A stretch of DNA of 64,000 nt from Amphiscolops sp. MND2022 (taxonomy: Eukaryota): positions 60,698,001-60,762,000 of the forward strand of contig OZ076414.1 of assembly GCA_964187785.1 (NCBI GenBank), written 5' to 3'. Positions 26,763 through 49,481 of the stretch are shown here, piece after piece. A model generated the notes under the pieces. It had not been told where the DNA came from. It saw only the letters and a list, made by a program, of their open reading frames with translations, and did not search any database. The position numbers were made by a program, and so were the translations under genes. Numbering within the stretch: the stretch's first letter is position 1; each line of letters begins with the position of its first letter.

Positions 26763-29700
26763 CTAAAAATGACAAACCATGAACAAAAAACTACACTAGA
26801 ATACCAAAAAAATCCATCATGCAATATCTCAAAAACCGCCTTTCCTAACAAAAAATGCATGGGACAAAGGGTGTACCTTCCTTCGATTCAGATCTATCAC
26901 TTTTGATAAAAAATAATTTCTTTTCTGACAACGCTCTCCTTCATAATTTGCACCGCAAAACGATCACAAAATACGAATTCCTCAATTTTTACCCAGTAAA
27001 ATTATGTTTCAACGAAATTACAATTGTTTTTGATTGTTCATTTTTGAGGAAGCACATTTGAGAAAAAGTGTTGCATATGAAAGTTAAAGAACGATGACAA
27101 GGCTACAAAAATAATCTAAGGTTTTTCTCCTGAAGAGTACTTTTCGAAATATTGCGTAATATAAGCTCGAAATTCCACGAATTACAACGTGATATAATTT
27201 TTTAATTTTGGTTCAATTTTTCATCAGACAAATTTTGTGTGTAATGTAAGAAGGATGGTTGTTCATGCCTGATATAGAGGTTGAGGAGGGTGAACAGATG
27301 AAGGTGCCGGGCACGACTGAAGAGGCCTCGACGTTGTTGAGCACCCCGTGGACATGGGCTCCAGCCACTGCGATCTGCGCGGAGCCAGCGGCACTGGAAC
27401 TCTTGCAGCTGCCGTCCAGAACCTACGGTGGGTGGAAGGGTATGCGGATATACACCGTTGATATACACTGACTTGATCACTCTTGAATTGATATTTAAAA
27501 ATAGGCCCCTCCGGGGCTCAGTACTATTTCTGCTTTAATCTTTAATTTTTTTTGAAACAAAAAATTCATTAATAAAAGAATCATATCTGGAATACCAATA
27601 CACTCTTGTTTAATCATTATTTAGCGCACAATTACATGTAATCACTGTACAAGTTTACACCGCCTTTAATTCTTCCCGACTAAAGAAAATATAACTACTA
27701 AGCGTAGACGAAGTTTCGCATTCGCATTTGAATGCAGGCGAAGCTCTCAACGAACGAATAATTAACACTCATTCGCTTCATCTCAATAACTCGGGGCAAC
27801 GAAAGCACAATTACGAACATTCGCTCGCTTCATCTCAATGACGTCAGCATACGAATGGATAATTACCACTCGCTCGTTCCATCGCACTAGAATTGAATTG
27901 TCTTCGGCAGCTCTCTCGCGTACACTCACTGCCGAACAAAATATCTGAATTATTCAGATCGTCCGAAAAATTGTACTGAAAAAAAATAAGTAGACATTTT
28001 CGGATTTCAATAATATTCCTGCTAAAGCAGAAATATTAAAAAATGATGCTGCTATTTTTTATGAATTATTATTCAAAGTGGCTTTAGCAAACTTCAATCT
28101 TGAATCACAAACTTCAAGTTCATGTTTCAGAAAACTTCGATGCAAAAAAGCTCTGGAACTGCTACTGATGAGCAAAAAGTTTTAAAAATACGGCACTAAC
28201 TATCAAGTTTTCAGTGATAAAAGCAAGTTTTTATAGCTAAAAAACATCAACAACCAATTTTCTACTTTGGGTTACCTTGATTTTTACATTGAGACAAGGA
28301 AACCCAATATCAAAGTTTTGACATTGCTAATATTTTCCGCTAATCGCCAAACCGCTAATATCAAAATCGCCAATTCGCTGAAAATTTTTGAAACTATTAA
28401 ATGTTTGATATAAAGTACAACGTATATTTCAATATTAAATGATAACTTTATTATTTTTCCGAGAAAAAAGTGGAATTTTTATACTGTGCGGGTTTTTCGA
28501 GGGTGAGAGTTGAATTTGACAAGTGAGAGTTGGAACTTTCAGAAATTTATTTCGAAATTCCGTGTATTTTCCGTGGAAATTTTGAATTGGGACCATTTAT
28601 TAGCTGCCGCTAATTTGAATCGCTGAAAAAATTCGGCTGGTAAGCGATGTGAAAACTATGTCCAATATGTACCTTGATCCCTTTCAACGTTGCGGATATG
28701 TTGGCGGGTAGTAGGAGCACTTTGTCGTTGTGTTTCACGAAGCCGGTCTTGACGATTCCGGAAATTGTGACGTTGTTCGAGGAAGTCTTGACGATATCGG
28801 TCACAGCCAGACACAGCTGTTGGTCCACCGCCCTCGTGGGGGCTGGCAGCAAGTCTATTGCCTCTAACAACGTCGGCCCATCGAACCAACTCAAACTGGC
28901 TCCTTTTTCCTGGAATTATAGATAGGAAATGATTAAAACAGGCCTCGTAGTAAATAATCAGAGCAACATTTTGAAAATTTACCATACAATATTGAACTCA
29001 AATTTCAGGTCAATGAAGTTTGCCAAAAGCTATTGAAACTCCGGGGTATCGTATTTCAGTTTTCCACGGAGGAAACTGAAATTATCTTCAAATCTTTGAA
29101 AAACGAAATCAAAATTTCGCCCCAGTTTCTGCAACAGTTTACATAAAACTTCGCTCAACTGAACTCTTTTTGTGATTTCTCTGAAAAATTACCAGTTTCT
29201 TGGACCTAAGGCTTAGGTCCAAGAAAGTGGTAATTTTTCAGAGAAATCACAAAAAGAGTTCAGTTGACTTTCAATTATTTCATGTGACTTACCTTTATGT
29301 TGGTACCATGAAACCCACTGCAGGGCAAGAACTGGACATCGGTTTCTTTGAAGCCGGCCTTTTTGACCAAGAAGGGCAGCAGAATGTTCTTTATCTGCTG
29401 CATTCGCTCCTGGGGGTTGGAACAGGTGTCGATCTTGTTGACAACCACCACCAAGTTTGTGATGCCCAGAGACCGGGCCAAAACTGAGTGCTCCGATGTC
29501 TGGCCCAACGAAATGTCTTTTGCGTTGAAACCTGTCAGCCAAGACAAAGAAATTAACTTTAGAAAAACAATAAATTCCACTTGTTAAAAAATAGGCCCCT
29601 CCGGGGCACACTATTATTTCTGCTGTACCAGTTTATACCACCTTTGAATCTTGGACTAAAGCAAATAAAACTACTAAGCGTAGACGAAGTTTCGCATTCG

Positions 29701-32700
29701 CAATAACACTCATTCGCCGAATGAGTGTTCATGCGAATGCGAAACTTCGTCTACGCTTCAGTTATTTTGTTCGGCAGTTCATCTCAATAACTCGGGGCAA
29801 CGAAAGCACAATTACGAACATTCGCTCGCTTCATCTCAATGACGTCAGCGTACGAATGCATAATTACCACTCGCTCGTTCCATCGCACGAGAATTAAATT
29901 GTCGTCGGCAGCTTGAGAAAGTTAATTCCCACGCTTACAGTCACTGCCGAACAAAATATATGAATTATTCAGTATCACGACAAGAATTGTACTGAACAAA
30001 AAAAGTAGAATTCTTGAGATTGCAATAATATTCCTGCTATCGCAGAAATAATAAATAAACCGGAAATTTTATTTACAAGAGGTACTGTACCTAAACGCTA
30101 CAAAATGATACAAAAAGTTAAAACAAGATGGACTCACGTATTGATAGTTGTTAACATTGGACTGAGGAGGAAAAGTTTTCGTTAGACTTCCAAATTTATG
30201 AAAAAAAATTGACGCTGAGATGCGTATATATAGCATTTCCCATAAAAACTGTTTAACTTTGAATCGAAAAATGTCAGAAACTTGAATTCAGCTGGCCTCA
30301 GTGTCAGCTATGTCATATCAAACCTCGCAGTATTCGAAAGCCAATCAAGTGAAATATAAAAAAAAACTTGAAGTTTTTCATTTTTTTAAGACGAAAGAAT
30401 TTTTCATCATTTCTAGACAAATTCAATCAGTGACTGCAACCTATATGCATTAAAAAATCTCGCCAAATTTAATTTTTTGACAAAGTCCAAAATGTCCAAT
30501 GAAAAACCGGAGAAAAAACAGAAACACGTAATATCGTGGGAGGTTTTAAAAATCCAAAGATATCCCAAGTCCCAAAAGTAATTAAAAGCAGGTTATTAAT
30601 CTCTTGTATTTGAGAAGCTCCGAACCCGATTCGAAAGCATTGACGGATGCGTCGACCACGAGGAAGGCTGCATCGGCTTCGGCGGCACCCGTGATCATGG
30701 CAGGAACAAAGTCTTTGTGGCCAGGTGCGTCTACAATTGCAACGTTGTACTTGGAGGTTTCGAAATACCTTAAACATTACAAGTAACATTACTGTGTTCA
30801 GAAATGAGACGCAGAAAACAAGTCGGGAACGGCATAAGTCGGCGCCATATCTAAGACTCAAAAATAGCAAAAGGACATGAAAGTGTCATAAAACTCAAAG
30901 TATCAAACTCACAAAAAGAGTATCAAAACCCAAAAAACCGAACTGGCGCGCCAGGTGCCCGCAAGCGCGGGCCCCTGGTGCGCTAAAAGGGGGGACACTT
31001 TCTGATTTTTTAACACCCAGTGTTGCAAAATATCAAAAATTGAAGGGGAGACCCTTTGGGTAACATTTTTTTTTCAAAAAAGTCTCAATGCCGAAAAAAC
31101 TAAAAGGGGAACCCTTCGGGATTTTTCAACATCCATTCTGTCGCTGAACATCAAAAAAATGAAGGGGGACCCTTTGAGGAACAAAATTCGAAAGTCTCAA
31201 TTCGAGACCCTTTAGTCTCGGTACTGTGTGTTACGCAGAAAAACAGGAAAAAATCTTTTTGGTTCAGTTCGCTAGGCGAAATGGTTCATTTGACACCATA
31301 ATATTTTGTAGAAGTTTTGAACAATTTTCGTCATTTGGTGGGGATTCAAAAAAAAGTCACTATAATAGTCGCGTTTCACTTCATGAAGCGCCGACTAAAA
31401 AATGTCGACTAACATTCCTTTACACTAGAAAAGTAGTTTCTGTCATCAATGAATCTCAAAAGCGAACGTTTCAACTTCGCGTTATATTCCTTGATTACAA
31501 GGTTTCTATCTAACATGGTTTCGCAATTTCTCGAAAGTCATTATCAGTCTCTCTGGAGATTATAGGACTGACAAAACAAAAAATTCTCATTCAATTTCAG
31601 CTGGGACGTTGAGAAAAATATCAGAATCCAATAACTTCACCACCGCCTAAGACCCTCCCCCCCTTAGTGCAAGTCCTTAGTACAGAGCTTATTGGTATGG
31701 TCAATGACAAAAAATAAAGCATTTGACGAAGAAAAGCGAAATGAAAAGAGCAACGTTGAGCAGTCAGACCTTTGTGACCTTGAGCAAGTCACTTTGAAAC
31801 CACAGCTTCAAATCCATCATTACTTGACCATTTGGCTGCAAATATGGTACCATAGCTTGCTAAGGGAAGATGGTATTCGAAAGGGCGCCGACTTAGAAAA
31901 GCAGCATCCGTCGAACATTCAAATCGTCGAAAAATGAAAAGCTATTCAATGCGTCGAAAGAATCCCATATCAGCGATTATTTTCATTTGGTTAAATTTTG
32001 TGGCGATTACTTTTCTCAGAAATATAGCAGCCACGTTGTTTGGCCGAAGACGCTTTTCCAATTGGCTTGTAATAATGTTGCTTTATTCACTGTTTGCCAT
32101 GAAACTATTTTTAAAAAGACAGCAGAAATTATTGCAATAAGTGCAATATTTTTTCAATTTTCAGAAATAAAAATAATTTATTTCGTGAAACAAAAATGAA
32201 AACTTTTTTAACGCAATATTATTGCAATTTTTCATTGCGCATCCCTGAGGAGGCATAGTGAAAGGACACAAAAAGGGGGATATGGTGTAACGGGTCAAAG
32301 GGGGGCATATTGAAAGAGATGCACACTACCTACCTCTCGCTGATCTCCATGGTGACCCCCCGACTTCTCTCGGATGCATTTTCGTCCATGACCCAAGCGA
32401 GCGCGAACGAAGACTTGCCCTCCTTCTTGGACTCCTGCTCAAACTTGTTCATCTCCTTCTTCGTCACGTGACCTAAACATCAAGTGTTGTTTAGACAAAT
32501 TATCGCATAAACAAAATTATTTAATTAATTATAAATCAATAGTTAAGTATTTAAAACCCCGTAATTTCCAAGTTTGAGAGCGTGTATTACTATTATTATT
32601 ATGGATTTTCAGATGGTTGATGATGATTATACATGTATATAAAAAACAAAACAACTCACACTATAAAACCCAATTTTCGACCAATCTGAAAAGATTGCTT

Positions 32701-35700: not shown

Positions 35701-38700
35701 CATTCTTCATTTTCCTCTGTTTCTTCATCGCTGTCAATGGTCAAAACAGTATCTCCAGCTGGAGTTTGAAGTTGGGGCATCTTTTCGTCTTTTCCAAACA
35801 TTTTCCTGCAAAGCCAATATTGCGGTTTCTTTTTTGCTTTGGGTTTTTCTCACCCGTTTCAAATTTTTTTGAAATGGATTGACGCTCTTTTTTAATTCTA
35901 GAAACGGTTGACTCATTGATCCCATATTTTTTGGCCACATCGGCCTGCTTCGCGCCCCCGTTCAGCTCTTTAACAATATCATATTTCTTACACAATGAAA
36001 GTTCCGTGCGTGGACGTTTGGTAGACATATTAACCAATCTGAAGATATCAACAGATTCAATTATTGAATAAAATAACAAGACTCCTTTGCATGTGCATGT
36101 AAACGCATTGTGCCTATTTCTCAGAAATGTCACAGAATTTCACCTTCCATCTCGCTATTAAGCGAATATTTCTGAGAAAAGTGACTCCCGGGACATGAAA
36201 AATCCTTGCTAATAAAAAATCTTGCTATTAAGAAAATTGCTAATAGGCAAACAATCTCACACCGTATACCGCTCGGGAGGATTTTTTACTTGCTAATATA
36301 TGAATCTTGCTATTAGAGCAATTGCTAATAAGCGAACTCCACTGTATTACGGTATTTCAGTCCAAAACTAGGTGTGAATTGAGTATTATCAGGTATTATT
36401 GGATCTTGTTTACGCCGTGTTCGGTCTTTGTTCAAATTACTTGTCTCGGTTGACACCTCTGATAGTAATTGTAACATCATGAAGCATATGCTCCCGAAGT
36501 TGCATCTCCTGAAGAACTGGCCGCATACTTGGGGGGGGGGGGGTTGCGGTCCAAGGAAACTTGATCAGCACCGTGATCACGTGATGTATTCCACGGTGTA
36601 TGAATCAAGAAAATATTTCAAAATTTATTTTTTTCGTGATGTGATCGGACACAATGGCCAGACAAATCAATCCGAGTTTTGTATGACCGAATTTGAATCA
36701 ACCGAGGAGGAAATTCCCGGAAAAGGAAAAGTATGATTTGTGAAATGATCTTTCACAAGAAAGTACTTCCAGGTTCAATTTTGCGAGCCTAATGCTAAAT
36801 TTGAAGTAATTCAATCTGATCGTTGAAAACTAGACTTTCAAGGAGCGAAATAATTGATGACGCGTTATTTTCCGTTACAAGCGTTATAGAAACGTTCCGT
36901 TACAGTAGTTTCAACAATCTATTAGATACAATTCGCATTCTTGCTCAGATGTTGAAAGGCCCAAACATCCTTCGTGATGTCAAGAAAATTCAATAATAGG
37001 GTTTAATTGTATCATTGTATCCAAATCTTTTGAGAGATCATAAGACGAGCTTTGGAATCAACTTTTGTGAAATTTGTTAGAAACAAGTTCAACACAATGT
37101 ATAACCAATAATAATTTGCGGGTGAGTCACTATTTCGAATATAATACTGCTCATTTTTTGTGGAATAGAGTGTTCGGAAGAGATTTTACAATGAGCTCTC
37201 CAGGTTTAATGAGAAATGACCTTTCTCATACCAAGTTGATTATCGCTTTTCCAGGTTTATCCTTCAAGTTAATTGTAACATTAACTTCTGGTGCGTCAGA
37301 AATATAAAATAGATAAAAATACATAAAATCACATGCCTGTGATTTCGGAGTTGGTGTGGAAATTGCAGTTTGGGAAGATGTCTGTAAACAATTGGAGGAG
37401 TTGGCTGAAACTGCGAGGCCGCCGGGGACTTTGTGCTGAGATTCTGCACTTTCTCCGTTCTGGACAGAAAGGCGGGAAAACTGACTTTCGTAGAGCACCG
37501 GACCAGACCCTGAAAAAGACAAGACACATCAAGTGCCAATATTCTGGTTTAACAAAAACTCGATTAACAATCGCCAAGATGAATCAATCCCGTTGCACCG
37601 AAATTTAAATAGAACTGGGGATCTTTTCTGTTAATTCACCGATTTAATCCCCCCAGTTAGGCGGTTAACAGAAATTATCATTGAATTAAAACAGCCCATC
37701 ATCAAATTGCAGCATTTTATAACTCTAGCTGCAGCCGAAACTCATTGCTCATATTGGGGAATTGAAAACTTCACGCTTAGCGTTGATAAAAAATACAACT
37801 TGATAATTTAATATTAAACTTAAGAACAGGTTTCACTGTTTGACTCCAACATTGAGGCAAAAAGTTGAATGCATTCAATCAAATAAAGGTTGATAAAACG
37901 ATAACTATTTTATCCAGGGTTGATTCTTAATCGAAAGAAACTATCGATCAAGGCATCGTTACTGAGTTTGCGAAAGCTCTCGACTTAGGTTTTTCTTAAG
38001 TTTCTGAAAAATAGGAATTATGAAAAATGTTCTTTCTTTAAATCGTTAACATGACTCATTTTCCATTTGATTGTTTTGAGGCTTCCATTAAATGGGCTTC
38101 TGCATCTGAAAGTCTCTTCTGCTGAATTTGTTTATTGTAGGTTTTTCGTTGTTTTGTTTGCAACATTCAACAGATAAATTTAATTACACCAATTTTGATT
38201 TAAATGAAGAGCATTCCAATTTAGTTGAATTCCGAAGCGGCGTTTACAGCCAATTAAAAACGACTTGAAACAAAAGCAATTCAATTCCAAAAAAGGTGAA
38301 GCATATTGTATTTCAAATAACAAACTTTCGGAAGCCAATCAAAAGTTCACCCAACTCAATCTCAAAATGAATAGAGAATCGCTTTCAATGAATATTGCAG
38401 AATGAGAACAAACGTAACTGCTGTCGATCACAAAAGAATTGTTCGTCACGGATGAAGTTTTCTTTCTCACTGCTTACTAAACGAGTATATGAAGCGACAC
38501 TATGGTTATTATACGACTCAATTTTATTGGTCAATTCACTTGATGCGTAAACATGCTTCATTTAAAGTAAAATTGGTGTATTACTTACTATTTGGTTTGC
38601 GCCTTTCAGCTTATCCTGAAAGTATGGGAACCGTGCGAAGCGAAACTATGTTGATCTGCAACGGTAATGATGGCCCAGTGTTCAGAGGGACAATTTTGAC

Positions 38701-41700
38701 TGAATGATGAGATAGTGCCGGTTCGCTGCAAGCTGCAGCCTCTTTGCAGTGTCAGTAACGGTCCCCGTAATATAAATATTGAAAACATCAAAAAGTGGAG
38801 GACATATTTACAAAACAAAACTTTCTACGTAGTTCTGTCTGTCTCAGAGGCTGCAGAGCGACATGCCGCCAACAAGCAATCGTAGAGTCATCTATCAGTG
38901 CTAAAGTTCACGAGGGAGGGCTGTCATAAATCTGACAATCCCTCGGATGCTTCCCATGAAACGATATAATTTCCGACGATCAATAAAATTTGAGATGCAT
39001 TGTCCTAATTTATAAATTACCCTCCACTTACCGATGTTTTCCAAATTTATTTTATAGGACCGTTATTGACACTGTAGAGGAGGCTCTACATCTTGCAGCG
39101 TACAGACACCCAAACTCTTTTCACTGACACACCCTCCATGTACTAGGGGCAAAAAATCCCACCTCTCTCTACAACATTTCCCGGTTTCAGTACGCGCGGT
39201 CCTTTTTATTATAGTTTAGGAGAGGAAAGAAAGGAAACAAAACAACAAAACAAAACTTACCATTCGGTAGGTTAACGGGGGACGCCTGACGCTTGATAGC
39301 ACCGTTAGAGGAGGAGGAGAAGGAGGTTGTGTCTTTGAGGTCGAGTGCCCTCTTAGTACCAGTAGCACCCCCTGTGGTCTCAGAAGTTGAGGTGGCGGCG
39401 AAGAAGTTGAGGTGAGACTTGTCTGGTTTGCGGGGACTGGCAAGCAGGGCGTCGATGGTGCAGTCCACACTGAAGTTGTTCTTCACCAGCAGCTGGGCGA
39501 CCTCGCCGTCTGGAAATGAGTCACCGACCACTTGTTGCACTTGCATCAGGCACGATTTCAACTTGGCTGCAACAAAAAACCACCCGGCTTGTTGGTTTTG
39601 AAATCATTAACGATTTACTTGTTTCTCGCATCTATAAGAGGTTCTTCATTTGCCCCAAATCATTTCACTAAACTTCAAAATCAGACTACTGAGTGCGCCA
39701 AAAAGAATTATTAAATAGGAGTCCACTGGCGGTTACACAAAAAATCAAAACCGATCCCGCATTGGGTTTCCGAAACAAACTCCAAAGGCGTTTTTCTCAT
39801 TTTGATCAGCATCAGCTGCCATTTATCATCGTCCTCGAGATAAAACCTTCCTTTAGGATCAAACTTTTGAGAGCGAGACAGCATTCCATTATACCACCAA
39901 GTATTTGCACCAATTTTGGGAGTATTATGAAACGTAATAAAAGCATGTTTTGAAAACTTTTCACAGTGTGCGTGCAACGTACGAACAAGCCAGGACCGGG
40001 CTAAGTCGGCGCCATATCTAAGGCTCAAAAATAGCAAAAGGACTTCAAAGTGTCAAAGTATTCTTTAAAATAGCAAAAGCACTTCAAAGTGTCAAAGCAT
40101 TCTCTTCTACAGTACCTGAAAAACCCAAAAATTGGCGCACCCTTTCGCATTTTTCAACATCAATTGTTCCAAAAAATTAAAAAAATTGAAGGGGACACTG
40201 TGGTGATTTTTTTCGGAAAAAAAGTCTCACAATGCCAAGAAAACTGAAAAGGTGGGACCCTTTAGTCTCTCCCGGTATTGTATGTTACGCGGAAAAAGAG
40301 GAAAAACCTTTTTGGTTCAGTTCGCTAGGCCAAATGATTCAATTTGGGACCATAAAATTTCGTATAACTTCCAAGAACTACTTTGGTCATGTTCGTATGG
40401 ATTGAAAAAATTTTTAAAAAGAGTCACTATAATAGTCGCGTTTCACTTCATGAAGCGCCGACTAAAAAGCATTGAAGCGTAACTTCGAAATTTGTATAAA
40501 GATTGCAATCAATGCAATGTTGCCTATGACGATTACAATTCAAATCGACCAAACAAATTTCGAATCGAGGTACCTCGGTCTTGTGGGGACAAAGACGAGG
40601 CGTCGAAACTCTTTGAGAGACTGTCACTCTCTTCGTCACTACTACTGCTGACAGGTTCTTCGGGGATCTTGGGTTCTTTCTTCGTTTCCACTCTGAACAA
40701 ACCAAATCATTCATAACATTTCCTTCATCCGGGAAAAATTTTCACGGAAGTTCCCATTAAAATGGATCGCAAAAGCTTGATTGACCAAAAAACTTTATAG
40801 CAGCAGATAGTCACAAGCCAGCGACCATGTCTTCAACAAGATCGGTTGCAATGAAAAACTATGACACCCAAAATGGTTGAATGAGTCAAAGTTTGCACTT
40901 TTTGAGGAGAGGAGTCCTCTCAGAGGACAGGTATAATATAACCACGAGTGATTTTTTGACGTACAGTAGAATGCCCTTATAACGGACCTGCTTCGGACCT
41001 AAAAATGTGTAGCTATAAAGACAATCCAATAAAAACACGGTATATGGATTTTTGGGGACAATGGCACAAAAAAATTCCGCTAGAAAAACTTTCGAGAAAA
41101 TATCCGTTATACAGCCATCAGGGATGCCAAAATAAACATTTGGTATTTTACCGGACCGTGGAATAAATTACTGTATTTTTTGCTGACATAAAATAAATAT
41201 TATTTCATGTAACAAAATATAAATTCAATACTTTCTCAAGTTAAAAAAATTATTTCAGAAAAATTTATTTTTCTGTGAGAATAGAATTAACAGAATTAAT
41301 GCGGCAGACACGGGGAATTCCCGCACAACAGAAGTCTCATACATCAGAAAATGAAAATTCGGTCCCATACGGCAGAATATTTGTTTATGCTGCAGTCTGA
41401 TTGGCTGGACTTTGAAATAGAATTGTTGAAAACGAGTGTCGGATTTTGCCGGAATTATTATTATACCGTAGTCAGCTATGTTCACATAGCCCTAAATGCA
41501 GGAGCAAAGCGAATCGGAGCGACGTGCCATATCGCCATACCTCAATGTTGCTATTTTGCGAAGCGACCGAGCCATACAACAAATATGCTAACCTCTTCAA
41601 AGAAAAGTTCCATACATATTGGCTGTAACCAGAGTTTTGACACCGCTAATCAGCGATTTAGCGAACTAGCGGCCGCGCAGGAATTTTCCAGCGATTTCAT

Positions 41701-44700
41701 TAGCGATTCAAATTAGCGGCAACTAACAGATTGTCCAAATTCAAAATTTCTTGTCGGTATAGACGGTGTTTCAAAATTAATTTCGGAAAAATTCCAACTC
41801 TTACCCTTGTAAAACTCGCACAGTACAAACAATTCTAGTCTTTTTTCTTCCAAAAACCGGATAAATTATTTTGAAACATACTTGAACTAAACATTTAATA
41901 GTTTACAGAAAAGCTTTTCAGCGAAATAGCGATTTTCAAATTAGCGGTTAAGCGATTTGAAAATCGCTATTTCGCTGAAAAGAGTAAGAGTTGGAAAAAA
42001 TAGCGATGTCAAAACCCTGGCTGTAACAGCACTAAAACCTAGTACACAACTCCGCTTATAACGATTTCCCGGGGACCGGCGTTTTTTATTCGTTATACCC
42101 GAATATCGTTTTAGGCGAAAATCGTTATATACTAGCATTGTGGCCGGAACAGTGAAACTATAGCTATAACTGGAATATCGTTATAAACGTAATCGTTATA
42201 AACGGAGTTGAGTGTAATTTGAATTCTGCTGTATGGGGCCGAATTTTTATTTTCTGCTGTATGAACAGGCCCCGGCAGAAACATCTAGCCAAAGCTGCTA
42301 CATGTATGTGTAAAAAAAACCTGCATTATTGGCCGCCAATTGCCAAGCTATATTTTACATGTAAACAATTTACATTTTATTCCTTTCTCTGTGAAATCAG
42401 AAATTTTATTAATAAAATACCTTTTTAGTTTTCATGACTAAAAATCACTAATTGATCTTTTTAATATCATTAAATAATTTTATGTAAAAATATGAAATAA
42501 TCTTGTTTGAATAATTTTTTTGGAATTCCTGATAGCCATCCGTTGTAAAGCCTTCTACTGTACTTGAAAAGTATCATATAGGCAGATAGTAGCAAAATTA
42601 ATTAAGATGCCGCCACTTACTTGATGTAGTTGGAGAAGGAGTGTGCGAGGTTGGTGGCCCCCTGGCCGGGGTACATGAACTGGGAGACAGAGGGGGAGGC
42701 GGGCCAGTCGTACTGCTCGTCCACCGAGGTGCTCATCGCCCCGTACTCACACACCTCGAAGTCATCAGTGAGCGACTCCCTACACGGTAAAACCCCCAGA
42801 TTAATTGATAATCAACCCCCAGAACTACAGGGTCTTTCAGAATTACGCGTCAAAACTATCGGTGAGACTCCCTTCGGATGCAAAACCCGCGAATCAATTA
42901 ATTAACCCCCAAAACTACAGGGTCTTTCAGAAATTATGGGTCAAAACTATCTTGAAATTGTAAGAATTGGTCAAATTTAACAAGAATGTGTTTTTTTTAG
43001 GTTTTACAAAGAAACAATTGGTTAAGTGGAAATTTCAATTTTCCCACTTCCTCTTTCCGTTTATGAATCAAGTTATCCAATACAGGGCTTTTCAATAAAT
43101 TATTTGTATTGCAATATATTGCAATATTTGTATTGCAATATATTTATTGGGGATGGCAAAAGGGAGCAATAATATTGCAATATATTGCAATAAATTGGAT
43201 TTGAAAACAAATGGAGCATTTCTCAGAAATATAAAATAACCACAATATAGCATACTTTCTGCGCTTTTGCTATTTCTCAGAAATATAAAACAACATATCC
43301 CCTGCGAGAAAATAGCCAAACCACACAAAGCAAGCAGGTCTAAGTATTGAAAATGCCTCCTAAAATTGATAACAGCGTGATTATGAAATTCTACAAACTT
43401 GTTGAAGGCATGCCTGCAGGCGGTTTGAAAAAATGACAACCAAAATATTTTAGGATCTTCTTAAAATTTTCATCAAATTAATTCGAGTATCAGATTTCAA
43501 CCCGCCTGATCAAAGGGTCAAAAAACCAGTATGAATGCATTTGTGGAAACAAACGTCAAAGAAATAAAAACTCTGGATGGAGCAATTTACTATCGCATAT
43601 TTCATCTCAGCATAAGGCTGATATGACAGATTTCTTACAAATTTAGCCCTTGATCAGACTACTTAACAGAATTTTTTGATTGTAACGCAGTTACAGCTAA
43701 ATCTAAAAACATTTATGGCAGGATTGATAAAATTACTTCTCAGTTGTTACCGTTTCCGGTCGTTACAGAAGAAGTCATCAGAAAAGGATCGAGATTTTTG
43801 GGACATTAGCAGCTTATAGACTGGTATTAATACTGACTCAAACATATCTGTTTATGACGTTTTTTTGTTGATATTTAATGAAAAATATTTTTCCTTGCTT
43901 TTTTCTCCCGAGTCTTCAAATTCTTCATATTGCAATATATTGCAATATATTTATTTCTGACAATGTTTATTGCAATATATTTATTGGAACTATTTTGATC
44001 CAAAATAATATTGCAATAATATTTTGAAAAGCCCTGATCCAATATACGGAAGCGATTACAGCTGTGTGAACATCATAATGGAGGTCATTTCCAGCACCTA
44101 ATGTAGATGAATAAACTTTTGATGTATGAAAAACAAAAGTTCCATATACTGCTGAAAATCTGTTGAAAAATGGTTACGTTCTGAACAGTAGTTGAGATAT
44201 TTGAAAATAAAGTTGACAATTTCTGGAAGAGACTGTAGAACATGTTTAAACACTGCATCAATTAATTCTATTCCATGTTCTCATTTCAGAGGGAATAAAA
44301 AAATTATTACCATTGATCATTGTCATCCTTTACTTAATCCGTTTGCTACAGGCAATCGTATTGCTTTGAACCCACTACTTGCTGACGTAATATGTCCTCG
44401 CACAGTATATTTCATTTATTCCAATTCAACTATTTTCCACGAAGCTGCTCGAGAAAACTCGTAGATTTCGTTTGTATCCAACTTTAGCTGCACTAACTTA
44501 GCTTTTGTGGGCAACCAAATAGATAGCGAAATTGACACACATTTTCTACTAGACACTTTCCAAAAGTTAACTTTTGGAAAGTGTCTAGTAGAAAATGTGT
44601 GTCAATTTCGCTATCTATTTGGTTGCCCACAAAAGCTAAGTTAGTGCAGCTAAAGTGCAAATTTGCACCTAATTAATAATCGACTAGTTAATTTTCGGCT

Positions 44701-46044
44701 ACTTTTCTGCCCTTTAATTTCGATGAGTTGCCTTCAGTGAGGTGTTTTCGACAAATTTCCCGCATACCTTTCATTAGGTTGACTGATTCAGGCAAGAATA
44801 AGAATTCTTATTCTTGCCTGAATCAGTCAACCTAATGAAAGGTATGCGGGAAATTTGTCGAAAACACCTCACTGAAGGCAACTCATCGAAATTAAAGGGC
44901 AGAAAAGTAGCCGAAAATTAACTAGTCGATTATTAATTAGGTGCAAATTCGTCAAAAATTACCGATTACCAACTGACTGTTATTAACCCACAAAAATGTT
45001 TCTCGTAAATATTATTGCCAAGTGATAATTATAAATTAATTTTCCGTATTTGATGGGTGAAATTTTTATTCTTGCTCATAATAAAGCTTAAACACTTGCT
45101 TATCGCAAGTGTAATTAGTTGTATAGGCGCATGAAACATTGTATTATTTGCTTAATGGTATAATTTACAGTGTAATATTTTGATGGTAATACAATAGGAT
45201 CACAAGATTAGCACTATATTTGCGTAAAGCGACAATTCGTCCCAAGCGACAATTCGTCCCAAATTCCAAAAAGCGACAATTCGTCCCAAGCGACAATTCG
45301 TCACATTTTGAAAAGGCGACAATTCGTCCCAATTATTAAAAGCTGCAATTTGTCCCCAATTTAATTGCCAATAAAGACCTTTGTAATAATGAATCCGGGA
45401 AGATTACAATTAGAGGCAGGTGCCAACAATTAATTTCAACATTCCACGACTAGTACGTTAAAATGCAACATTTTCTAATTATTGTCACGTGGTTGAATGA
45501 ATTCATTTGTAGTTGGTTTGATTATTTCTTTCATTTCAACCTTCAAAAGGTTGGTAATTAGCTGATCAATTAAACAATTTGGGACGAATTGTCGCTTTTT
45601 ACAAGTGGGACGAACTGTCGCCTTTTCAAAATGGGACGAATTGACGCTTGGGACGAATTGTCGCTTTTTGGAATTTGAGACGAATTGTCGCTTGGGACGA
45701 ATCGCCGCTTGGGACGAATTGTCGCCCAAACCTATATTTGGAGTCGATTTTCTGTGCTTGCGAGTTTTTCGCCGCAAAATTTTTGGCAAGTTCCTTTTCG
45801 GCCAACGGGTTTTTTTTGTAGATTTCTGATGAAAAGAGCCGTGAATGTGCTAGCGAAAAGTTTGAAAAAAAAACAATTTGTTTTTCTATAATCAGATGGA
45901 CTCCAGGGGACACCTATAAAAGATAAAAGCATATTATGCTTCTTGTGAAATGTTTTACAAGTTTCTATGAAATTTCAAAAGATGATGTAAAGCATAAATC
46001 TCTGAAACTCACTGTCTGTTTCTGATGTACTGGTGTCGAGCCAT
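26446..46044 (-). CDS. HBS1L: HBS1-like translational GTPase gene, 12 coding exons, ~725 aa
   Basis: Exons 46013-46044, 42621-42779, 40574-40692, 39261-39566, 37337-37509, 34802-34961, 32334-32472, 30626-30768, 29293-29531, 28673-28909, 27269-27422 and 26446-26762 join in phase (2178 nt). Shows an MARH N-terminus, an HBS1_N-like helical domain, G1 [23 protein letters not shown] and EF-Tu-type domains II/III ending [17 protein letters not shown]. Confidence 0.94.
27269..27422 (-). CDS. HBS1L: HBS1L exon 11 (ends at a GC donor)
   Basis: Acceptor caccgtag|GTT. Encodes [29 protein letters not shown]. Donor TCAG|gcatga, phase 1. Confidence 0.85.
27497..28040. mobile_element. Non-autonomous element (aaaaataggcccctccgggg family), copy 1
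   Basis: Colinear with 29586-30055. Subterminal inverted tatttctgct/agcagaaata. Confidence 0.7.
28312..28658. mobile_element. Degenerate hAT MITE of the cagagttttgac family
   Basis: gttttgacattgctaat...ccgcta repeats...agcgatgtgaaaac. Confidence 0.5.
28673..28909 (-). CDS. HBS1L: HBS1L exon 10
   Basis: Acceptor aattccag|GAA and donor AAG|gtacat. Encodes [34 protein letters not shown]. Confidence 0.94.
29293..29531 (-). CDS. HBS1L: HBS1L exon 9 (G4/G5)
   Basis: Acceptor ctgacag|GT and donor AAG|gtaagt. Encodes [26 protein letters not shown]...[12 protein letters not shown]. Confidence 0.94.
29586..30055. mobile_element. aaaaataggcccctccgggg family, copy 2, with internal foldback
   Basis: Colinear with 27497-28040 except for an 83-bp palindrome at 29676-29758. 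Confidence 0.7.
30626..30768 (-). CDS. HBS1L: HBS1L exon 8 (G3)
   Basis: Acceptor gtttaag|G and donor G|gttcgg. Encodes [41 protein letters not shown]. Confidence 0.92.
30817..31402 (+). mobile_element. DINE/Helentron-like element (copy e)
   Basis: Head aaacaagtcgggaacggcataagtcggcgccatatctaag; tail actataatagtcgcgtttcacttcatgaagcgccgactaaaa. Confidence 0.65.
32334..32472 (-). CDS. HBS1L: HBS1L exon 7 (switch I/G2)
   Basis: Acceptor atgtttag|GT and donor AG|gtaggt. Encodes [35 protein letters not shown]. Absent from the ORF track. Confidence 0.94.
32963..33619. mobile_element. hAT MITE with nested element and tRNA-SINE head
   Basis: Termini cagagttttgac/gtcaaaaccctg with TSD ctaacaac/ttaacaac (7 of 8 match). 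Confidence 0.8.
33251..33320 (+). mobile_element. tRNA-derived SINE head
   Basis: A box TGGCACAGTGG and B box GGTTCGAATC. No cloverleaf acceptor stem. Confidence 0.6.
34802..34961 (-). CDS. HBS1L: HBS1L exon 6 (P-loop)
   Basis: Acceptor tacttttag|GTA and donor G|gtcagt. Encodes [24 protein letters not shown]. Confidence 0.94.
35274..35421. mobile_element. Small pogo-type MITE
   Basis: TA|cagttgaatccgcccaattc ... gaattaaccggagttgactg|CA, an imperfect TIR. Confidence 0.55.
35430..36344 (-). mobile_element. pogo/Tigger deletion derivative, second 915-bp copy (HBS1L intron 5)
   Basis: Reverse complement of 23675-24589. Same length, TA TSDs, and identical translated ORFs in the ORF track. Confidence 0.9.
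37337..37509 (-). CDS. HBS1L: HBS1L exon 5 (low-complexity linker); 3' end at 37337 (GC donor) or 37232 (GT donor)
   Basis: Acceptor tctttttcag|GG, phase 1. Both candidate donors are phase 0, as exon 6 requires. Confidence 0.7.
39261..39566 (-). CDS. HBS1L: HBS1L exon 4 (HBS1 N-terminal helical domain)
   Basis: Acceptor tttgttgcag|CC and donor G|gtaagt. Encodes [41 protein letters not shown]. Confidence 0.9.
39984..40468 (+). mobile_element. DINE/Helentron-like element (copy f)
   Basis: Head aacaagccaggaccgggctaagtcggcgccatatctaaggctc; tail identical in design to copy e. Confidence 0.65.
40574..40692 (-). CDS. HBS1L: HBS1L exon 3
   Basis: Acceptor tttgttcag|A and donor G|gtacct. Phases 2 and 1 fit the neighbouring exons. 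Ends SLSPQDR. Confidence 0.82.
41630..42019. mobile_element. hAT MITE, 390 bp
   Basis: cagagttttgac/gtcaaaaccctg with a perfect 8-bp TSD gctgtaac. Confidence 0.88.
42045..42214. mobile_element. pogo-type MITE, 170 bp
   Basis: TA|cacaactccgcttataacgat ... atcgttataaacggagttgagtg|TA. Confidence 0.75.
42621..42779 (-). CDS. HBS1L: HBS1L exon 2
   Basis: Acceptor ccgtgtag|G and donor AA|gtaagt. Encodes [32 protein letters not shown], resembling the HBS1L 'GxSVEDD..SP...QF.Y' N-terminus. Confidence 0.88.
43083..44036 (+). mobile_element. hAT deletion derivative with BED-type zinc-finger remnant
   Basis: 13-bp TIR cagggcttttcaa/ttgaaaagccctg with a perfect 8-bp TSD atccaata. Internal [28 protein letters not shown]. 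Confidence 0.88.
44481..44656. repeat. Perfect spacerless palindrome, 2 x 88 bp
   Basis: Checked base by base; centre ...caaaagtt|aacttttg... between 44568 and 44569. Confidence 0.97.
44660..44949. repeat. Perfect spacerless palindrome, 2 x 145 bp
   Basis: Checked base by base; centre ...aataagaa|ttcttatt... between 44804 and 44805. Confidence 0.97.
45225..45730. mobile_element. Foldback/MULE-like MITE whose long TIRs are built from 17-bp AAGCGACAATTCGTCCC modules
   Basis: About 6 forward units at 45227-45357 and about 7 inverted units at 45580-45727, around a ~220-bp core. Confidence 0.75.
46013..46044 (-). CDS. HBS1L: HBS1L exon 1 (start codon)
   Basis: ATG GCT CGA CAC CAG TAC ATC AGA AAC AGA CA|gtgagt gives [10 protein letters not shown]. 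It matches the family MARH start and is phase 2, as exon 2 requires. Confidence 0.85.
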
Positions 46045-47798: not shown

Positions 47799-49481
47799 CT
47801 AAAAATGCAACTGATTGAAGTGGGTCAAACTTTGAGAAGCATCAATGATATTGGTAGTACTTGATAAATCAACGACACTGAACAGGACAGAGTTATTGGG
47901 CTGATGAAAACTCAAGGATACGTTGCTGCTGAACGAGGGTCTCAGGTACTGGTTGTACCCTCTGGTTGTCGGCATGGTGTTAGCCGGTGCCCATTGTTGT
48001 TGTTGCTGCTGTCTGGGAGGGTTAACCCCGCTCCTTCTGAGGTCAGTGGCAGCAACAACGGTCGCGGCAGCAGCTAAAGCATCGTTTGATACAAAGCTGA
48101 ATGGTGAAGAGTTCGAACAGAAAGGGTTGCTACTGTTGCTCGCGTTATTTCTCATTTCGTTCATGACTTGAAAAGGGTTGGCTGGTAAAAATGATAAATG
48201 TGGAGCCAGAATATTAGTTGCTGGTTGTGCAGCTGTGGCTCTCTGGTCGAATGAGTTCCCAAGATTCAGGGGTATCGAAGGAGCATGAGTTGCTACCCTG
48301 GGGTTCACGTGTGCACTGGGCAACAGATTTGCTGTCATGCTGGTATTTTGAGGTAGAATTGAAGCTGCGGCTGAGTTGTGAAGACCAGCGTTGGCTAGAA
48401 CTTGTAGAGATAATGAATAGCTGGACAAAGATGTGACTTCTCTGGGCTGAGACGCTACTGAACTGACTCCGTTCAATCTGAGGTCATTGGCAGTCGCTTG
48501 CACCGGATTGAATTGTCCGAACTGCAAGATCCCAGGAGCCATGGGTAAGGCGCCAGGAGTCTCGAAGTTACCAGCCCACCTATTTTCTCTACTGCTGTTG
48601 TAGCCAAGCATCCGCTGAATATCAACATGGGCTTGTGGAAGAATAGTAGCAAAAGGAAACGAAGCCGAGCGGAATAGCAAATCTTGAACCTGCTGAGCAG
48701 CTCTGAACGCAATGTTTTGATTGGCATTAGCGGAAGCTCCGAAATCGTAGCGTACAAAAGGTTCTCCCAACTGTCGATGTCTATTCCGGGAGTGAAAAGG
48801 ACCCCGATAGTGCCTATACCGGGATCTATTCGGGAACGACGAGTCAGGATTTCTATGGTTGGGAAATGACCTGTACTGTGAAAGATTTCTATGTTGACCC
48901 TGTGTTGTGTTACCCGTTGCACGGTTTCCTTCATTTAGACCAGCTGCAGATGAAGCATGAGTCTCTAACTCTGAAAGAGTGGCTGTGATCCGTTGAGAAA
49001 TTCTCCGCTTAAACTCGTCTATTGTTAAGCCGTCTTCGAGCATGATAATGTTGCTCTTTCTATCATCTACTTCGTCAATATTATTTCCAGACCTGAAGCC
49101 AAGTTCTTCCTTCATAGTAGCTGATAGTCCTTCACTCAGGATCTGAATTTCCTTCGATAAATCAGAGCATTTTTTGAAAGCTGTAGGTTCGCATCGGCAC
49201 AAGGGACATGTAAGTTGGCGATTCATCCATTCACTAATGCATCGCTTGCAATACGTGTGCTTACAAGGTAACAGAGAGAACGGAATGTAGAAAACAAACG
49301 AGCATATACTGCACTGCATGTCTTCAGCTTTGGCGGAAAGATCATCGTCAGGCGCATCCAAGTGCGCACTGGTTAAACCTTCCAGCTTTCTCCGAATTCG
49401 CTTCCGCTCCAGTACCTTCAGCGACTCAAAATGAACAGCCCCATTGTTAAGACGAGTTTTGCTGCGGGTAACTGGCGCCAT
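47799..49481 (-). CDS. Single-exon C3HC4 RING-finger protein (RNF8/CHFR-like RING), probable E3 ligase with long low-complexity C-terminus, 560 aa
   Basis: Uninterrupted 1683-nt ORF. RING: CSIC...LLPCKHTYCKRCISEWMNRQLTCPLCR. The remainder is Arg-rich then A/S/N/Q-rich. An in-frame upstream acceptor means an additional upstream exon cannot be excluded. Confidence 0.85.
   Translation of the reverse strand: MAPVTRSKTRLNNGAVHFESLKVLERKRIRRKLEGLTSAHLDAPDDDLSAKAEDMQCSICSFVFYIPFSLLPCKHTYCKRCISEWMNRQLTCPLCRCEPTAFKKCSDLSKEIQILSEGLSATMKEELGFRSGNNIDEVDDRKSNIIMLEDGLTIDEFKRRISQRITATLSELETHASSAAGLNEGNRATGNTTQGQHRNLSQYRSFPNHRNPDSSFPNRSRYRHYRGPFHSRNRHRQLGEPFVRYDFGASANANQNIAFRAAQQVQDLLFRSASFPFATILPQAHVDIQRMLGYNSSRENRWAGNFETPGALPMAPGILQFGQFNPVQATANDLRLNGVSSVASQPREVTSLSSYSLSLQVLANAGLHNSAAASILPQNTSMTANLLPSAHVNPRVATHAPSIPLNLGNSFDQRATAAQPATNILAPHLSFLPANPFQVMNEMRNNASNSSNPFCSNSSPFSFVSNDALAAAATVVAATDLRRSGVNPPRQQQQQQWAPANTMPTTRGYNQYLRPSFSSNVSLSFHQPNNSVLFSVVDLSSTTNIIDASQSLTHFNQLHF

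Follow-up and report, generated by a model that had tools for sequence, protein, structure and literature searches.

Two perfect palindromes lie back to back at 44481-44949 in the 64-kb window (the whole stretch of DNA that was analysed), where it is plausible from the sequence that they sit in the first intron of a putative HBS1-like gene encoded on the minus strand. The putative first coding exon of this gene starts with an ATG at 46044, is followed by a GTGAGT donor and has an N-terminus that we take to be HBS1-like; it lies upstream of, and on the same strand as, an exon at 39187-39561 whose match to HBS1_N is weak and falls below the Pfam cut-off. The first-pass annotation had assigned the palindromes to HBS1L, a gene context that is plausible, as they lie between the putative first exon and the exon with the weak HBS1_N match. 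Just upstream of the HBS1-like gene an intronless open reading frame of 560 aa with a RING finger (C3HC4) occupies 47799-49481 on the minus strand, and a CENP-B_N/HTH open reading frame fragment resembling a pogo-type transposase is found inside the HBS1-like gene region at 35741-36133, also on the minus strand.

The right-hand palindrome reaches into MITE-1, an old copy of a MITE family of ~450 bp with long TIRs, which lies on the plus strand at 44841-45087 and continues at ~45732-45800, as delimited by BLAST against six other copies. Its left terminus, GGTATGCGG, begins at 44841 in the alignment. Identity to the six copies is 81-85% over 44835-44973; in two of them the match resumes at 45021-45087 (79-81%), and a single copy (L008) also matches 45732-45800, at 76%, beyond a second MITE-like element that is nested in MITE-1 at 45227-45710. 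The TIRs of the nested element are ~135 nt long, 90% complementary and built from 17-bp subrepeats (GCGACAATTCGTCCCAA), and in being long and rich in subrepeats they resemble foldback or MULE-type ends (PMC5499845). Its summed contig depth of 10^5-10^6 in all sequencing runs indicates that the family is extremely abundant.

A repeat search of the window returned the two palindromes in the order A-A'-gca-B-B', exactly as the first-pass annotation had described them, with arms of 88 and 145 nt and neither mismatch nor loop. Arm A (44481-44568, 88 nt) abuts A' (44569-44656, 88 nt) and arm B (44660-44804, 145 nt) abuts B' (44805-44949), with complementarity of 100% and 0 nt between the arms in each pair; the palindromes measure 176 bp (A-A') and 290 bp (B-B'), and with the 3-nt filler gca at 44657-44659, which joins them, the whole stretch comes to 469 bp. 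HpaI and EcoRI sites mark the two centres. The chance of even a perfect 88-nt arm, ~4^-88, is negligible. A scan of the 64 kb found no other perfect long palindrome, and at arm lengths of at least 30 nt it yielded two further palindromes only, both imperfect and both with a single-base centre. When folded as RNA the stretch forms two complete hairpins, one for each palindrome, at -417.5 kcal/mol as against -108 +/- 6.7 for shuffled sequences (z = -46.5).

The junction between the two palindromes has a symmetry of its own, since the 14-bp palindrome that the first-pass annotation had placed across it is indeed seen at 44655-44668. If bases are numbered by the last two digits of their positions, the filler g57-c58-a59 pairs with t64-g65-c66 of B, and the last two nucleotides of A' (g55 and t56) pair with c68 and a67 of B, so that the final 2 nt of A' and gca together complement nucleotides 5-9 of B exactly. 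B opens with the self-complementary AATT, which gca and the 2 nt of A' extend into the 14-bp palindrome. The chance of such a configuration is ~1e-3 (five specified bases at 35% GC), a figure that applies to a configuration recognised after the fact. By analogy, the junction looks like a small templated insertion with microhomology in the style of alt-EJ, an outcome that is described in yeast (PMC11724301) and in the Drosophila literature (PMC5728401, PMC2943611). Viewed on the opposite strand, the new arm, whose 3' end reads ...gcaaatt, could have been extended by tgc(ac) on a ...gtgcaaatt template, after which the extended end would have met the end of A' through 2 nt of microhomology; the filler thus appears to be templated.

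The flanks distinguish the resident arms from the copied ones. On the right, B' is composed of 36 nt of unique DNA (44805-44840) followed by the first 109 nt of MITE-1; in the six family copies the match to B' crosses its outer border at 44949 and runs up to ~44973, and in a base-by-base alignment B' and the right flank track the family consensus straight across 44949|44950. In the inverted arm B the family match ends at 44662, and the reverse complement of B departs from the family exactly after ...gcaaatt. Because only B' continues colinearly with the family into the flank, B' is the resident arm and B the later inverted copy. On the left, two contigs built from sequencing reads, X3 rec19 (44315-44568) and X4 rec28 (44369-44568), begin in the flank, traverse A and stop precisely at 44568, from which it follows that A is resident and A' the copy. 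A and B' are thus ancestral and A' and B are secondary copies, each adjoining its own template, and only A'-gca-B, 236 bp in all, is new DNA.

The first-pass annotation had recognised neither arm elsewhere, and this is borne out for one of the two: a genome search found no other copy of A in the 1.07-Gb assembly, whereas ~109 nt of B are part of a dispersed repeat family, for which a first-look search gave at least 368 candidates that are 79-87% identical. The other copies of the arm-B repeat have neither palindrome border in common with the locus. As the arms are 100% identical and the MITE is only 79-87% identical to its relatives, the duplication must be far younger than the MITE. A direct reading of the sequence gives the order of the new piece as A' followed by B, as is to be expected if two ends each folded back; had a local segment been inserted once in inverted orientation, the order would be B-A', and for the same reason a simple tandem duplication, inverted, of the 233-bp local segment was rejected.

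Sequencing reads bear on the locus through Logan contigs (k=31) of four runs from one study, no RNA run being among those that cover the stretch; X1, X2 and X4 derive from sample S1 and X3 from sample S2. For the reference allele, a simulated k=31 graph has a unitig ending at 44510, then unitigs at 44481-44583, 44554-44656, 44627-44689, 44660-44819 and 44790-44949, and one starting at 44920. Each of the S1 runs yields contigs that agree with the reference without a single difference, namely 44369-44510, 44660-44819 and 44920-45118 in X1, 44660-44819 and 44920-45158 in X2, and 44790-45158 in X4 (rec29), and the breaks observed in these three runs (44510, 44660, 44819, 44790 and 44920) all coincide with unitig borders of the simulated graph. 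For 44510 and 44920 to be borders, the k-mers of the A'-gca and gca-B junctions must be present, and the exact 15-nt overshoot beyond the centre of B (in contigs that end at 44819 or begin at 44790) implies that reads cross it. At the centre of A the binned depth in X1, X2 and X4 is compatible with crossing contigs, and none is found among the contigs listed.

Depth leads to the same structure. Over the left flank, S1 carries a haplotype like the reference, with depths of 28.8 (X1), 20.8 (X2) and 11.8 (X4), and a divergent one, with depths of 42.7, 32.3 and 30.7 in the same runs. The arm-B contig has a depth of 59 in X1 and 43.4 in X2, about twice that of the reference haplotype, as would follow if that haplotype contained every one of its k-mers in two copies. 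In the three runs, all of one sample, essentially every molecule of one haplotype thus carries the structure. In X3, the only run from another sample, no contig spans either centre or the junction, and the library was apparently cut at GATC/GANTC, which would destroy such k-mers. Contigs of X3 break with 25-30 foreign letters at a GATC (44315-44318) and a GANTC (44820-44824), which suggests that X3 is a Hi-C library whose contig ends at these sites carry no allele information.

The reading that we favour, at a probability of roughly 0.6, is that a single double-strand break, each of its ends copied by fold-back before the two were joined, left the locus as its scar, in a germline rearrangement that is real and very recent. 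The recent double fold-back, which had been one of several options in the first-pass annotation, is supported by the resident outer arms, the novelty of A'-gca-B and the reads. The break would have fallen between what are now positions 44568 and 44805. Before rejoining, the left end would have gained an inverted copy of its last 88 nt (A giving A') and the right end an inverted copy of its first 145 nt (B' giving B), presumably because short-range resection exposed a 3' tail that folded onto itself, or onto the sister copy, and primed synthesis over the resected stretch. If such synthesis stopped only on reaching the 5' end of the strand that had been resected, the lengths of the two arms (88 and 145 nt) would record how far short-range resection went at either end. 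The extended ends could then have been joined by an alt-EJ or theta-like step that left the 3-nt templated filler and used 2 nt of microhomology. The feature that such fold-back copying explains worst is the missing loop, for which synthesis would have had to be primed in trans, on a sister tail of identical sequence, or a hairpin ligated and then opened far away from the tip.

Local fold-back inverted duplications at double-strand breaks, terminated by NHEJ or alt-EJ, have been obtained experimentally in yeast (PMC11724301). The Break-Ins of that system resemble the present locus in that an inverted copy adjoins its template in the local flank and the other side is end-joined with short filler or microhomology. 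At the locus both copies adjoin their templates (A|A' and B|B', 0 nt apart), the templates are resident DNA continuous with the flanks, by MITE colinearity on the right and by contigs on the left, and the 3-nt filler, the 2 nt of A' and the 14-bp palindrome at the junction are what capture by NHEJ or alt-EJ might leave, a pathway that we infer. Most of the fold-back insertions on record measure 5-34 bp, involve one end and retain a loop (of 41 nt in the yeast system; PMC11724301), whereas the locus is two-ended and loop-free, with arms of 88 and 145 nt and, at both of its spacerless centres, no loop or spacer at a short inverted microhomology; it is also a heritable natural allele, and the yeast Break-Ins are induced somatic events. 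A related case is snap-back synthesis by SD-MMEJ and polymerase theta, for which snap-back templated insertions are reported in the Drosophila literature (PMC5728401, PMC2943611). In the fold-back inversions and hairpin-capped breaks of yeast mre11/sae2 mutants and of cancer breakage-fusion-bridge cycles, broken ends likewise become hairpin-like inverted duplications, but these are reported as chromosome-scale duplications or dicentrics that are usually nucleated by spaced short inverted repeats (PMC10622511, PMC7467729), whereas at the locus the chromosome was resealed locally and only 236 bp were added.

The absence of a loop is accounted for best by enzymatic hairpin caps, a history in which a hairpin-forming nuclease or transposase (Transib/RAG-like, hAT or MULE) excised an element and sealed both flanks, and host nucleases then nicked the caps 88 and 145 nt from their tips, leaving giant 'P-nucleotide' tracts that were subsequently joined. 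A hairpin made by direct trans-esterification would be the simplest source of a loop-free palindrome on both flanks, and two MITE families with long, subrepeat-rich TIRs adjoin the site. The hAT, Transib, MULE and RAG1 enzymes form flank hairpins that are opened by the host and joined by NHEJ, and the P-nucleotide footprints of V(D)J/RAG, Transib, hAT and MULE events share with the locus loop-free palindromic additions on both flanks followed by end joining (PMC5499845). Against this origin, the break lies 36 nt outside MITE-1 and not at its end, and the tips lack an element end and any TSD pair: none was found of the length expected for hAT (8 bp), Transib (5 bp) or MULE (8-9 bp), nor a TTAA or TA, the last 5-9 nt of A being different from the first 5-9 nt of B'. 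Both centres are spacerless, whereas the offset of a hAT-type reaction, by the Hermes mechanism, should give a single-base centre. Known P tracts, moreover, are a few nucleotides long, and the additions at the locus are far longer. Enzymatic capping is on this evidence unlikely.

The inverted pieces might also have arisen without a two-ended break, by replication template switching of the FoSTeS/MMBIR kind, in which a nascent strand at a nick (A|B') switched strands twice, A' and B being made in a single pass. Three strand switches in succession are enough to spell out the new piece, its junction has templated filler and microhomology, and template-switch origins of inverted insertions are discussed for the yeast system (PMC11724301). 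Both switches would, on the other hand, have had to fall on one and the same base pair without any offset, a coincidence that a broken end predicts, and at neither centre is microhomology evident beyond that imposed by symmetry. Such an origin is decidedly unlikely.

Perfect spacerless palindromes are a classic signature of an artefact, which the first-pass annotation had listed among its options. It would have arisen in assembly or library preparation, from a foldback molecule that was chimeric, an adapter that was missed, or a chimera of amplification that became fixed in the consensus. Every run comes from one study, and the three decisive ones (X1, X2 and X4) come from one sample, which may be the source of the assembly itself. 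Foldback-read artefacts are read-sized, however, and the arms are 88 and 145 nt; contigs rebuilt from the raw reads of three runs break where the graph predicts, and the k-mers of arm B are present at twice the full haplotype depth and not in a minority of reads. Break points and depth together rule out a stray chimeric read or a consensus error, with independence from the sample of the assembly being limited, and an artefact is very unlikely.

A captured hairpin-ended linear DNA, the remaining option of the first-pass annotation, or a foldback transposon, in either case inserted between 44480 and 44950, is extremely improbable, for although the 469 bp formally equal an opened 236-bp dumbbell and the structure is young and polymorphic-looking, A is continuous with the left flank and B' colinear with the MITE into the right one, so that an insertion would by luck have had to restore MITE colinearity across 44949|44950, and both outer arms are resident, not the site-foreign sequence of a linear replicon of the protelomerase, parvovirus or poxvirus type. 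Foldback transposons and long-TIR MITEs share with the locus a long inverted repeat, and arm B is in part a MITE; a foldback element or a MITE composed of two TIRs was nevertheless rejected as the origin, since the borders cut through MITE and unique DNA and do not coincide with MITE ends, A is single-copy where such a class has multiple copies with the same ends, and there is no TSD. The arms are, in addition, 100% identical, whereas the MITE is ~80-85% identical to its relatives.

The double fold-back allele is probably polymorphic. X4 rec28 and X3 rec19 end at 44568 without extra letters, where a graph of the pure palindrome predicts an end at 44583, and in simulation an end at 44568 is obtained only if another allele has A in common with the reference and diverges from it at the palindrome's centre; these contig ends are a hint of a second allele that lacks A'. 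The divergent haplotype of S1 is the obvious candidate, and its k-mers merge with the reference over 44369-44568. Along the 210 bp of 44189-44398 this haplotype has 11 substitutions relative to the reference and an insertion of 4 nt (ACAT, after 44217), a divergence of ~5%, and over 44369-44568 it is identical save for G>A at 44405. Since the contig 44660-44819 is unbroken at 44804, this putative allele does not lead from A straight into an identical B'. An X3 contig that starts from 44821 with 25 unaligned letters was considered as the second allele and dropped, its end being a Hi-C-type break at a GANTC.

Most of what is known of repair by fold-back comes from cancer genomes and from breaks engineered in yeast, and if the double fold-back reading is correct, the locus offers a clean, natural and heritable specimen in which both ends were folded, the arms are several times the experimental length and no loop is present. 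The lack of a loop constrains the mechanism, as it is hard to obtain from simple snap-back priming. Perfect palindromes of 176 and 290 bp are able to extrude cruciforms and are expected to be fragile, which makes the allele a candidate for following palindrome decay in a population. If the intron of the HBS1-like gene is transcribed, its pre-mRNA would carry perfect hairpins of 88 and 145 bp, and the locus would be a newborn source of hairpin RNA; in that event the stems might serve as substrates for ADAR or Dicer, as the first-pass annotation had proposed.

A more tentative proposal, which we regard as possible but doubtful, is that the locus is the youngest case of a recurrent, lineage-specific germline process in which both ends of a break are turned into loop-free, hairpin-like inverted copies and then rejoined. 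Inefficient opening of hairpin tips, or an endogenous hairpin-forming nuclease, could be its cause. Such a process, if it exists, would leave a genome-wide mutational signature and would seed A-A'-B-B' double palindromes across the genome, with long perfect sources of hairpin RNA inside genes. A 200-kb sample of other chromosomes contained no further abutting pair; it did contain a perfect palindrome whose 48-nt arms flank a 1-nt centre (L031:6964-7060, G000:C3:20126964-20127060), the remaining match being an AT-microsatellite. In the window itself there is a near-perfect palindrome at 29155-29267 (56-nt arms, 1 mismatch, single-base centre G), which is unique in the genome, and another at 29676-29758 (41-nt arms, 2 mismatches, single-base centre C), which has two short partial relatives; both may be older products of a related process. 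The two are 409 bp apart and flank an apparent minus-strand exon at ~29285-29540.
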